Assembly: GCA_002269645.1 (NCBI GenBank) | Contig: NIVC01004521.1 | Location: 1-43,388 of the forward strand | Direction of reading: 5' to 3' | Length of the DNA stretch: 43,388 bases | DNA from: Macrostomum lignano | Lineage: Eukaryota | Part shown: piece by piece, positions 33,001-41,534 of the stretch | Layout of the letters: every line of letters begins with the position of its first letter | Numbering within the stretch: position 1 is the stretch's first letter | The notes under the pieces: model-generated | The model's database searches: none | What the model saw: the letters and a program-made list of their open reading frames with translations, nothing else | What the model was told of the DNA's origin: nothing | Position numbers and translations under genes: made by a program

Positions 33001-33438
33001 TCAACAGGGATTAAGCTCAAATTCGCGCAATATTTTCAAGCCTTCCAAACAGCCGAAACGTTTCAGCGTTTCGGCCAGCTGCGACACTGTGAGGCCCCGA
33101 TCTCGAATCAAGTTTAGCAGGCCTTGGTGCAACAAGTCGGCAGGATTTGTGTACTGGCGCTGCAGCAACTCCAAGTTGACAGCTGAGATGCCCAGATTCT
33201 CCAAAACCGGCCGATATTTGCTGCTCAAATCTTGAGAATTGCACAAACGTCGGGCCAGACCGGTTGTTGCAACAATTTCAGCATAGGAACGTTGCAACAA
33301 TTCCACAATGTCACTCTGGTGCCCCGCTGTCACATGCTGGGACACTCTGACGGAACCGCTGCCACCGGTGGGGCGGTAAAATGACACCATTTCACCTCCA
33401 ACAGTTCCAATGCTCACGGTGAAGGCTCCACTTCTTCG
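33001..33438 (-). CDS. Terminal exon encoding a C-terminal death-fold (death domain-like) region
   Basis: [64 protein letters not shown] fits the death-domain helix pattern (xxLGxS..I..I...Y......LL.W.....TV..L...L), with the usual Trp residues substituted. Confidence 0.7.
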   Translation of the reverse strand, partial: RRSGAFTVSIGTVGGEMVSFYRPTGGSGSVRVSQHVTAGHQSDIVELLQRSYAEIVATTGLARRLCNSQDLSSKYRPVLENLGISAVNLELLQRQYTNPADLLHQGLLNLIRDRGLTVSQLAETLKRFGCLEGLKILREFELNPC

Positions 33439-39400: not shown

Positions 39401-41534
39401 ATAATCCACATGTTTGCCCGACCTCAATAGGTCAGTAAACTGTTGGACATTGTCACTTATCTGCTCACGGATTGACAGCTCAGTGAAGGCTTCCACAACC
39501 AGCAGTCCGTACAGATACCTGTCGCTAAACTGGTCAGGCTGTCGGATCGGATCTGAGACAGTCTCCGGCAGCTGCTTATCAATGCCTCGCTTTTGCTCAA
39601 AGTCCAAAGTTTGTGGCGATAAATTCGCTTCCGTAAGTTTCTTTGAGAGGCCGAAGTCTGCGATCTGGGATTAGTCAGATAAATCAGTTCTGCTATAAAT
39701 TACAGATAACAAGTGTTTTACATTACTGAAGGATACATGGATGCAGATCAAACCAACTCAGTGACACACATGCAGATGCAGATCAAACCAACTCAGTGAC
39801 ACACATGCGGATGCAGATCAAACCAACTCAGTGACACACATGCGGATGCAGATCAAACCAACTCAGTGACACATGCAGATGCAGATCAAACCAACTCAGT
39901 GACACATGCAGATGCAGATCAAACCAACTCAGTGACACACATGCAGATGCAGATCGAACCAACTCAGTGACACACATGCAGATGCAGATCAAACCAACTC
40001 ATTCAATCCGGACACACAGGAATGCAGACAACGCACAATAACGTGTGAGTATGTTAATAGGTGTTAAGATGGATTATAAGCGAAAAAGTGTCAAAGCGAA
40101 CACACCTTGATATCGAGCTGGTCATTGATTAGCACACTATCCACAGACAGATCTCTATGTATAATCGCTCCTTTTGGTCGAGTTTGCAAATAGTGGAAAG
40201 CATCTGCAATCTGGAGCATCCAGCTGGTTTTCAACCACGGATGATACAGACTATCTAGATTGCTCTGGAAATAAATGAAAAGAATGAATTATTGAAATCA
40301 ATCAGCATTCAGCAATGAATAGAAAAATACTTCTATTTCAACTTATAGTTACCAATTTTGACAGATGCAAACTAAAGGACCGAATACTGCCCAGCCGACA
40401 GTATTCCATAGTAAAGCCGGAAAGTTTAGTATCCCGACTGTACAAATGGTAAACGCTAATAAACTGTTCGCGTTCCTGACGCAGATCGTTTAGCAGCGCG
40501 ATCTCTTTTACTAAGTGGTTGACCAGCCTGGAGAAGAGAAATAAAAATGTTGACAACAATAATTTATATTGGAAGCTAAACTTTCCAATGGAAGACATTT
40601 TATGCAGGTCTTAACGAGGATATGTATTTTCTTTAGTTTTTTTTGTCAAAAGGGTTATGTTATTTGTAAGATCAAAATACAGGGAGTGTCATAGGCCCCA
40701 AGGGCTGGATTCCAAGTGCAGTCGCATTAATTTCGGTGCACCTTTTTTAACGATAAATAAAGTCAGGACCGCTATACACTCGTGCGTGTGCCTGTGTGTA
40801 TGACTGCGTACGTATCGGGGAGTCGATGGAATGGGCAGTAACCCAGTAATGCCTTTTGACGGTTGTGTGACAATGTCGCTTAAAGTGCGCCATGATATAG
40901 CAAAAATAATTGCTATATCATACCCCAAGTTCCGTTTTCATTAACTATTTGTTTAGATAATTTTTAAAGAGAAATATTGAAGCAAACAAATATTAAAAAC
41001 TTTCAGAAACAACTAAATAAAACTCACCACTGCGTTCGACTGGCGTCGTTAAATTCGAATAACTTGACGGCCAACGTTTTCATTGTAGGATCATTTTTGA
41101 GCCAGCATCGATGCACGCTTGCAATGCTGCCTTTGCCTAACAGATAGGATTAAAACAGATAAAAAAAAGTTAGTTTTAATTAGCATCGTGGATTATTTTA
41201 AATTCAGAAACTTAAACAGATAAACAAAAGCTAAGAAATCTAATATTTTATGCAGGTACACAACTGATATTTCGGTCTTTAATAGTGCTGATTGCAGTGA
41301 AAATTTCTAGGGAACAATTATAGAATAAATAGATAACTATATAGAAAAATTCTCAGACCATTTGGCACTTAAATGATAGAAAAAACCTACTGCACTTTTG
41401 TCCTAGCTTTAGAAAAAAATGACAAAGAAGTTCATTGAAAGTTCACACAAAGTACGCATAAAAAAGTTCTTACCTATCAACGAATTGCTGGGATATATAA
41501 CGTCATTTTGCGAAGTGTTCTTTAATTTTGCCAT
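33001..41534 (-). CDS. Tandem kinase (pseudo)kinase A - kinase B - death domain protein, RIPK/TKL-like, 13 exons, 888 aa
   Basis: Exons (minus strand): 41534-41474, 41136-41028, 40527-40353, 40264-40106, 39664-39167, 39089-39017, 38918-38801, 38132-37955, 36966-36802, 35987-35409, 34435-34400, 34322-34245, 33438-33001. All introns are GT-AG and phase-compatible. The sum is 2667 nt with no internal stop, and the ATG sits in ccgccgATGG. Confidence 0.85.
33465..34225. repeat. Degenerate ~18-nt minisatellite (TCAGTGACAATTTGACTA)
   Basis: Read directly; fills the last intron of the tandem-kinase gene. Confidence 0.92.
34535..35372. repeat. ~27-nt minisatellite (GGATTGGATGGGATTTTAACACATGTA) with longer variants
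   Basis: Read directly; intron 34436-35408. Confidence 0.95.
35409..39089 (-). CDS. Kinase domain B (exons 6-10), canonical catalytic residues retained
   Basis: LIG|[60 protein letters not shown]. Confidence 0.88.
36015..36720. repeat. 31-nt minisatellite (TCTGTGCTGTCATTAGCATCTGACATTCTAG), about 23 copies
   Basis: Read directly; no spacers; intron 35988-36801. Confidence 0.97.
37020..37911. repeat. (GACA)n array evolving into a 16-nt unit (GACAGACAGACACTAA)
   Basis: Read directly; intron 36967-37954. Confidence 0.97.
38256..38744. repeat. 33-nt minisatellite (TTGAGAATCTGTCTCTCTGCTCTTCTCCATTCC), about 15 copies
   Basis: Read directly; it produces the 11-aa repeat ORFs 38202-38795; intron 38133-38800. 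Confidence 0.97.
39167..41534 (-). CDS. Kinase domain A (exons 1-5), probable pseudokinase
   Basis: LIG|[60 protein letters not shown]. Confidence 0.85.
39736..40001. repeat. 33/35-nt minisatellite (ATGCAGATCAAACCAACTCAGTGACACACATGCAG), 8 copies
   Basis: Read directly; intron 39665-40105. Confidence 0.95.

Follow-up and report, generated by a model that had tools for sequence, protein, structure and literature searches.

A tandem-kinase gene with a probable C-terminal death domain in the flatworm Macrostomum lignano

Contig NIVC01004521.1 of the Macrostomum lignano assembly GCA_002269645.1, analyzed here over its entire length of 43,388 nucleotides (the window), carries on its minus strand, between positions 33001 and 41534, a gene whose product joins two kinase domains, A and B, to a C-terminal helical domain. 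This double-kinase gene is intact and transcribed, and its product is constrained and cytosolic, with a complete kinase, another kinase that lacks the asparagine of the catalytic loop, and the helical domain at its end. The helical domain probably has a death fold. We hold with moderate confidence that the product, of 887 or 888 amino acids (aa), is a functional, Macrostomum-specific, cytosolic signaling protein composed of two duplicated kinases and a probable death domain (DD), with kinase B clustered through the DD. The kinase-kinase-DD architecture is apparently undescribed and, as far as databases show, confined to one species.

Gene structure, transcript support and gene copies

An independent splice rebuild of the minus strand from 41534 to 33001 gives thirteen GT-AG exons that join into a single open reading frame (ORF) of 2664 nt, or 887 codons and a TGA, with AG acceptors and GT donors throughout. 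These are the same exons that an initial annotation of this DNA had joined in frame, and the three junctions for which it had asked for a check (39167>39089, 35409>34435, and 34245>33438) are all present in the rebuilt model. The length of 888 aa given at that time is one of two forms: our rebuilt form has 887 aa, and the longer one, which the GenBank protein uses, arises from a tandem NAGNAG acceptor at exon 9 (ccag/cag/CAGATG, where a slash marks a possible splice junction), at which an AG located 3 nt upstream (36966 versus 36963) adds one Gln. The upstream AG is used by the GenBank protein P0001 (QQ, in STMQQMGGG, 888 aa) and the downstream AG by the gene models P0033, P0034, and P0035 (Q, 887 aa). 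Keeping any single intron in the transcript leads to a stop within 1-31 codons, and between a genomic stop 26 codons upstream and the ATG at 41534 there is no other in-frame ATG.

The GenBank protein, BOX15_Mlig005512g2, partial (P0001, 894 aa), is labeled 'hypothetical protein', with its kinase domains noted. It shows 100% identity to the rebuilt model over 100% of its length and differs from it solely by six residues upstream of the ATG, the GenBank coding sequence starting at 41552, and by the extra Gln. The gene models that GenBank has for this assembly are based on a genome-guided RNA-seq transcriptome in which gene boundaries were taken from trans-splice and poly(A) reads (PMC5730564), and because the model is derived from RNA-seq it provides transcript support that is independent of our rebuild; through these models, the double-kinase gene is transcribed. 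The initial annotation had considered that transcripts might end after exon 5. Read-through from exon 5 stops after 6 codons, at 39146, and exons 5 and 6 are joined in the models P0001, P0033, P0034, and P0035, which come from four loci.

A second contig, L001, encodes the same protein and, judged by its near-identity to the window, is probably the same locus assembled twice, and diverged copies occur elsewhere in the assembly as Mlig009930 g2, g3, and g5. The early description of the gene as intact holds well in this comparison, with a single ORF and with all 13 exons and every AG and GT boundary kept in four copies (the window, L001, L003, and L004). Relative to the window, L003 carries 15 synonymous and 11 non-synonymous differences (pN/pS 0.21) and L004 carries 14 and 7 (pN/pS 0.15); overall, pN/pS among copies lies at 0.15-0.23, and for each kinase unit taken alone it is below 0.35, a substitution pattern that indicates purifying selection on the double-kinase gene. 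One copy, Mlig009930g3 (L004, 12522-13099), has a 1-nt deletion in exon 10, through decay of the copy or through an error of assembly; because of this deletion, the model P0034 is truncated (at TQMERRETEC, followed by a stop), before the linker and the helical domain.

Two kinases from a duplicated five-exon module

Unit A (residues 16-305) scores 81.0 and 81.3 bits against the Pfam families PF00069 (Pkinase) and PF07714 (PK_Tyr_Ser-Thr), and unit B scores 75.9 and 70.6 bits, where the Pfam cut-offs are 31.7 and 23.1 bits; by these profile scores, both halves are bona fide kinase domains. They are 47% identical to each other over 330 alignment columns. Each has four internal introns, and these agree between the two in alignment column and in phase: phase 1 within the first glycine of the Gly-rich loop, phase 2 in the Trp before alphaC, phase 0 after the hinge, and phase 0 before IADFG. 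The identity together with the four common intron positions and phases shows that A and B arose by internal duplication of a five-exon module, which is the origin first proposed for them. The short linker exon that joins the two units, exon 6, had been seen as a mirror of exon 1; the two align, and the first codon of exon 6, ATT, stands opposite the ATG of exon 1.

The two kinases had also been described as complete folds, a description that holds for both as Pfam domains and, as regards catalytic residues, for kinase B. Kinase B has all of the Gly-rich loop, the beta3 Lys, the alphaC Glu, the HRD Asp, the catalytic-loop Asn, and the DFG Asp, and kinase A has the same set except for the catalytic-loop Asn (HRDLSVDS). 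In HMMER alignments the Ser that replaces it aligns exactly on the Asn of EGFR (HRDLAARN) and of FERONIA (HRDVKTTN), and the same Ser is seen in other copies of the gene. The catalytic-loop Asn of kinases coordinates Mg2+. Because Ser occupies this Mg-binding position, kinase A is likely to be weak or regulatory, and it is probably a (pseudo)kinase of the kind that forms the N-terminal domain in JAK or GCN2.

Searched against the PDB, the family profile matches PLK4 at 64.8 bits, RIPK1 and FGFR3 at 55.9 bits each, and JAK and SOBIR1 at about 51-53 bits; RIPK1, like RIPK2, is among the better PDB kinase matches. Across the PDB and 5.8 billion proteins, the profile places the kinase in no named family and turns up neither caspase nor TIR domains nor other fusion partners; among the 5.8 billion proteins no relative from outside M. 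lignano scores above 78 bits, and the matches of the double-kinase protein to plant RLK-Pelle kinases reach at most 68 bits.

The linker and the C-terminal helical domain

A mostly disordered, Ser-rich linker of ~75 residues leads from kinase B to the helical domain, which has ~105 residues. The initial annotation had placed a death fold at 33001-33330, and this placement is borne out in part. Death (PF00531; gathering score 22.6 bits) is the top Pfam family, below threshold, both for the 183-aa tail (16.4 bits, E 0.0098) and for the 106-aa helical part of it (18.3 bits, E 0.0026), where the match extends over profile positions 9-84 of 86. Used by itself in a word-index homology search, the C-terminal exon retrieved no protein, its own parent included, and this search is hence uninformative. 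In an exhaustive HMMER comparison of the same exon with 1.84 billion representatives, just two proteins came up: P0003, which belongs to the gene's own family, and P0032, a 3881-aa coiled-coil/ankyrin protein that we rejected as a relative, its score coming from one 34-residue helix repeated 11 times identically. As this comparison retrieved nothing beyond the gene's family and a spurious repeat protein, no alignment of the C-terminal domain could be built.

Two AlphaFold (AF2) runs from the single sequence gave models of low confidence (mean pLDDT, the predicted local distance difference test, of 48.6 and 57.0), and both show six to seven helices over residues ~782-887, with a pLDDT of ~70 over the last five. 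When these models are compared with the PDB by Foldseek, death domains come first: FADD, TNFR1, and again FADD lead for the first model (probability up to 0.95, E 0.45-0.67), and RIPK1, TNFR1, and PIDD/RAIDD lead for the second, trimmed model (probability 0.98, E 0.32). The TM-score to the target is 0.5-0.6, and death-fold structures make up ~15 and ~23 of the top 50 matches of the two models, respectively. The combination of the leading Pfam family and the leading Foldseek matches makes a death fold the probable identity of the domain.

The models also place a beta-hairpin in the linker, at low model confidence, which contains VSIG and lies at the position that the RHIM occupies in RIPK1. No Pfam match to RHIM was found at E up to 10, and the double-kinase protein contains neither IQIG nor VQVG.

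The 5' end, an upstream third module and the origin of the fusion

In L001, L003, and L004, the sequence ctcttTTCAG/TATAA lies 22 nt before the ATG of the double-kinase gene. The trans-splice acceptor motif of M. lignano is [T/C]TNCAG, and its spliced leader (SL) sequence and a 1-kb criterion for operons have been reported with it (PMC8629364). From the stop codon of the gene upstream to the ATG there are 724-749 nt, and the intergenic gap is well below 1 kb, since the 3' end of the upstream gene, with an ATTAAA signal 196 nt past its stop, lies further downstream. Both the acceptor motif and the spacing fit an SL trans-spliced downstream gene of an operon by the published criteria (PMC8629364), and the 5' acceptor of the double-kinase gene appears from its sequence to be an SL trans-splice site. 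The window differs here from the other copies and reads ctcttGCATG/TATAAG, so that the site (41557-41563, minus strand) spells TTGCATG, as the spliced leader does in its last 7 nt. The assembly was polished by Pilon with RNA-seq as well as DNA reads (PMC5730564), and this SL-like patch makes up essentially all of the differences between the window and L001 upstream of the ATG. In view of the RNA-seq polishing and of this concentration of differences, we read the patch as SL bases that were probably written into the genome by polishing and are an artifact; as such, the patch is an indirect sign that suggests trans-splicing at 41557/41556.

The upstream gene, Mlig005512g1, is a third kinase module. 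The last exon of this module is preceded by a phase-0 acceptor, cag/ATTGCTGATTTCGG, and the whole unit is complete in L001 (6208-9294), with five exons, intron phases 1,2,0,0, and its own stop codon. Its catalytic loop is non-RD (HLDLALDN), and in L001 its exon 3 is interrupted by an in-frame stop. The copy of the last exon in the window, at the contig end, has many single-base indels: over the last 1 kb the window and L001 differ in 41 indel columns and 3 substitutions, and over the next ~9.8 kb they differ by zero substitutions except in the SL-like patch upstream of the ATG. Because indels so far outnumber substitutions at the end of the window, consensus errors at the contig end are favored over decay, and pseudogenization of the window's upstream unit was rejected.

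Two forms of transcript or model connect the upstream unit with the double-kinase gene. UniProt entries P0002 and P0003, from an older annotation, fuse the upstream unit to the gene, skip exons 4, 11, and 12, and misread part of exon 2 in the wrong frame, and by their exon structure they are regarded as mis-fused ab initio artifacts. In L003 (10001-13331), transcript P0035 (Mlig009930g2) joins the exon-3 donor of the upstream gene to the 5' acceptor of the double-kinase gene, a junction that is out of frame for the upstream gene. The 28-aa N-terminal extension of P0035 was rejected as a real part of the protein; it corresponds to upstream exon 3 in the +1 frame, from a read-through transcript and a longest-ORF call.

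Taken together, the 5' acceptor, the third module, and the cis-splice in L003 suggest that the two kinases were fused by cis-splicing between adjacent modules. By this route, the last exon of one module would have gained a donor and would have been joined by cis-splicing to the 5' acceptor of the module behind it, and the ATG of this downstream module would then have decayed to ATT.

Alternative explanations

Several points weigh against a functional double-kinase protein with a working DD. The Death score is below threshold (18.3 versus 22.6 bits), a partial match to the DprA winged helix (DprA_WH) comes nearly level with it (E 0.0057 versus 0.0026), a phmmer search of PDB sequences with the helical domain gave chance matches and no death domain, the AF2 models are of low confidence, and the Foldseek E-values are all above 0.3, none of them significant. 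In the DD exon the gene copies show no informative differences, so that it gives no signal of selection, and one substitution cannot decide whether kinase A is inactive. Searches of the literature and of supplements turned up no expression, localization, or phenotype data for Mlig005512 or Mlig009930. The classical DD adaptors FADD and CRADD are reported absent from flatworms (PMC11463336), so that signaling by this protein from a DD receptor would have to proceed without them. The same study describes a caspase of M. lignano whose pro-domain is kinase-like.

The first five of these points, along with the lack of any true homologue of the C-terminal exon among the 1.84 billion representatives, would suit a tandem kinase whose tail is a lineage-specific helical bundle or a winged-helix-like domain unrelated to death domains, with no DD signaling. 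We consider this rather unlikely, as Death ranks first among families in both scans, with a match over nearly its full profile, whereas DprA_WH is matched over part of its profile; two separately built models place DDs at rank 1-3, with a third to half of their top 50 matches being death-fold structures; and the number of helices and the length of the domain suit a DD. If the domain is a DD, the order of kinase and then C-terminal DD, the RIPK1 DD as the best Foldseek match of the trimmed model, and the presence of RIPK1 and RIPK2 among the better PDB kinase matches might be taken to mark a true RIPK1 orthologue, that is, a divergent flatworm RIP kinase with a duplicated kinase domain. This is extremely unlikely, given that RIPK1 (55.9 bits) does not score above PLK4 (64.8), FGFR3 (55.9), JAK, and SOBIR1, that there is no RHIM, that among the proteins searched no homologue from outside M. 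lignano exceeds 78 bits, and that the RIPK1-5 clade is reported absent from invertebrates except amphioxus (PMC9573974).

The tandem arrangement of the locus raises the question of where the protein begins and ends. Kinase A and kinase B with the DD could be separate genes of a tandem array or operon, with the single ORF a by-product of read-through transcripts pieced together from short reads mapping to a number of near-identical copies: the first unit of the array is a separate gene 739 nt upstream, read-through cis-splicing between adjacent units exists (P0035), and model P0033 starts inside exon 5, and P0034 ends before the DD. We find this very unlikely. The start codon of exon 6 has been lost (ATT) and there is no in-frame Met before the Gly-rich loop, so kinase B is not translatable alone from exon 6; the donor of exon 5 is canonical and read-through past it meets a stop after 6 codons; the frame is held across all 12 junctions in four copies; both units are under purifying selection; and the truncation of P0034 is due to the 1-nt deletion in exon 10. 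The protein could instead be longer than the double-kinase model, a triple kinase with a DD in which the upstream unit lies in the same ORF, as P0002 and P0003 have it, as the shared identifier stem of Mlig005512g1 and g2 might imply, and as the transcript in L003 that links both genes could be taken to mean. To this we give next to no credence: the upstream unit has its own stop codon with ATTAAA 196 nt later, the junction from exon 3 of g1 to g2 is out of frame for the upstream unit, the upstream unit of L001 carries an in-frame stop, and P0002 and P0003, with their skipped exons 4, 11, and 12 and their partly misread exon 2, are poor ab initio models, whose triple kinase finds no support in the models based on transcripts.

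Features of the locus and its surroundings

The features of the double-kinase gene and of the adjoining upstream exon are listed in Table 1.

Table 1. Positions in the window of the exons, signals, and repeats of the double-kinase gene and of the neighboring third module (a slash marks a splice junction or a codon split by an intron).
Feature	Positions	Strand	Description
Last exon of third kinase module, Mlig005512g1	42259-43078	-	From IADFG to HDY and stop; separate upstream gene
5' untranslated region (UTR) and trans-splice/cis-splice acceptor	41535-41563	-	UTR 41535-41556; window TTGCATG/TATAAG, other copies TTTTCAG/TATAA(G/C)
Exon 1	41474-41534	-	61 nt; ATG at 41534; phase 1 end inside first Gly of Gly-rich loop; identical in 4 copies
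Exon 2	41028-41136	-	Kinase A Gly loop GKGSIASV, beta3 Lys LAVK; phase 2 end (TG/G)
Exon 3	40353-40527	-	Kinase A alphaC Glu (VKEIALL) to hinge; phase 0 donor
Exon 4	40106-40264	-	Kinase A catalytic loop HRDLSVDS; Ser replaces catalytic-loop Asn
Exon 5	39167-39664	-	Kinase A IADFG, activation segment, C-lobe; donor AATCT/GTGAGT to exon 6
Exon 6 (linker exon)	39017-39089	-	73 nt; homologous to exon 1, ATT where exon 1 has ATG
Exon 7	38801-38918	-	Kinase B Gly loop GKGSFAVC, beta3 Lys MALK
Exon 8	37955-38132	-	Kinase B alphaC Glu (VHEIKYM) to hinge
Exon 9	36802-36966 (or start 36963)	-	Kinase B catalytic loop HRDLAVDN, intact; NAGNAG acceptor
Exon 10	35409-35987	-	Kinase B IADFG, activation segment, C-lobe, then start of tail
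Exon 11	34400-34435	-	36 nt; linker, predicted disordered
Exon 12	34245-34322	-	78 nt; Ser-rich linker, predicted disordered
Exon 13, first part	33322-33438	-	Linker with predicted beta-hairpin ~33370-33423 (low-confidence AF2 secondary structure)
Exon 13, second part	33001-33321	-	C-terminal helical domain, aa ~782-887, probable death domain; stop TGA 33001-33003
Poly(A) signal AATAAA	32858-32863	-	~140 nt past stop codon of double-kinase gene
Intron minisatellites	33467-34226, 34522-35371, 36014-36720, 37021-37912, 38256-38740, 39740-40001		Periods 18, 27, 31, 16, 33, and 35 nt, respectively

Six of the twelve introns of the gene each hold a different minisatellite, and the lengths of these arrays vary strongly among gene copies (between the window and L003, 441 versus 1209 nt in intron 4 and 973 versus 385 nt in intron 10). 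Long tandem-repeat arrays also lie outside the gene (10307-11216, 17754-18839, 20336-20696, and 22837-23337), one of them of a GTCT type with a motif similar to that of the array in intron 8. These outside arrays are consistent with the 15% simple and tandem repeat content reported for the M. lignano genome.

The remaining neighborhood, a DEG/ENaC fragment, a CaMKK-like kinase gene, an orphan ORF, and repeats, is uninformative on function. On the plus strand, an ORF at 1501-2328 gives a 68.8-bit match to Pfam ASC, the amiloride-sensitive sodium channel family, over the C-terminal part of that family, and presumably forms one exon of a DEG/ENaC channel gene. On the minus strand, ~13663-19745 belongs to a multi-exon kinase gene with CaMKK-like exons (annotated gene to 26152), which is unrelated to the double-kinase family by tblastn, and the immediate downstream neighbor of the double-kinase gene, at 28193-29365, is a His/Gln-rich 390-aa ORF (372 aa in the annotated gene) with no Pfam match.

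Proposed function and relation to known systems

If the C-terminal domain acts as a DD, it would bring the protein into a homotypic DD oligomer, either by self-association or with another DD protein, and the kinase B domains clustered in this way would trans-phosphorylate and signal onward, with kinase A modulating kinase B. A candidate partner would be the single NGFR-like TNF receptor of flatworms, which has a weakly conserved predicted DD in a lineage that, in M. lignano, also has TNF ligands (PMC7519573). A role in cell death or immunity, which the initial annotation had inferred, is a guess. One could go further and see in the protein a switch analogous to RIPK1, reached by convergence, for death or inflammatory signaling of the TNFR type in a protostome lineage without FADD, CRADD, and RIPK-clade kinases, assembled from a (pseudo)kinase, an active kinase, a hairpin at the RHIM position, and a divergent DD through exon-module duplication and operon read-through splicing; we regard this as distinctly unlikely.

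Several known systems share parts of this architecture. RIPK1 is likewise a cytosolic protein that begins with a kinase and ends with a death domain, with a long intermediate region of low complexity between them, but the M. lignano protein has two kinases, no RHIM, and no specific affinity to the RIPK clade, and its DD is probable only. The early characterization of the gene as RIPK1-like thus fits its domain order and not its kinases, whose profile shows no preference for RIPK1 over PLK4, FGFR, or JAK; kinases of the RIPK1-5 clade are, moreover, reported absent from protostomes (PMC9573974). IRAK, Pelle, and Tube combine a death domain with a TKL-type kinase in innate immune signaling and include the pseudokinase members IRAK2 and IRAK3, but in IRAK the DD precedes a single kinase, whereas the M. 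lignano protein begins 20 residues before the Gly-rich loop of kinase A, leaving no N-terminal DD, and shows no specific sequence affinity to IRAK. DAPK1 also starts with a kinase and carries a death domain close to its C-terminus, but its kinase is a CaM-regulated CAMK-type kinase and it has ankyrin repeats and ROC-COR, none of which Pfam detects in the M. lignano protein.

Among proteins with paired kinases, JAK and GCN2 place a degenerate N-terminal kinase-like domain directly before a fully equipped kinase, and JAK kinases are among the PDB matches. The FERM/SH2 modules of JAK and the HisRS/RWD modules of GCN2 are not found in the M. lignano protein, which has no sequence N-terminal to kinase A that could hold a FERM or SH2-like domain and no such Pfam match, and neither JAK nor GCN2 has a C-terminal DD. 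In contrast to the paired domains of JAK and GCN2, the M. lignano kinases are recent paralogues, 47% identical and derived from an exon-module duplication, and kinase A has lost only the catalytic-loop Asn. The plant tandem kinase proteins Yr15/WTK1 and RPG1 also have two kinases that arose by duplication or fusion, one of them often degenerate, and act in immunity, but they belong to another kingdom and to RLK-Pelle lineages, usually have no further domains, and have no death domain. We found no description in the literature of a kinase-kinase-DD protein, in keeping with the initial annotation, which did not recognize this architecture from any named family. Its proposal that the protein is lineage-specific agrees with the searches as well, in which no relative outside M. 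lignano exceeded 78 bits among 5.8 billion proteins and the C-terminal exon had no true relative among 1.84 billion.

The locus also bears on how such genes are assembled and annotated. Polishing with RNA-seq reads may have put spliced-leader bases into the assembly, and the UniProt models of the gene are mis-fused. More generally, the locus shows a route to multi-domain kinases, with three tandem copies of a five-exon module, two of which are fused by splicing, and a similar cis-splice still occurs between the first and second genes. RNA interference and transgenesis work in M. lignano. The extrinsic death signaling of flatworms has a receptor, a TNFR with a weak DD, and no known adaptors, and the double-kinase protein, if our reading of it is true, would be a candidate component. 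If its C-terminal domain is a working DD, then the protein would be a protostome signaling protein of the kinase-then-DD type that was built independently of the vertebrate RIPK family.

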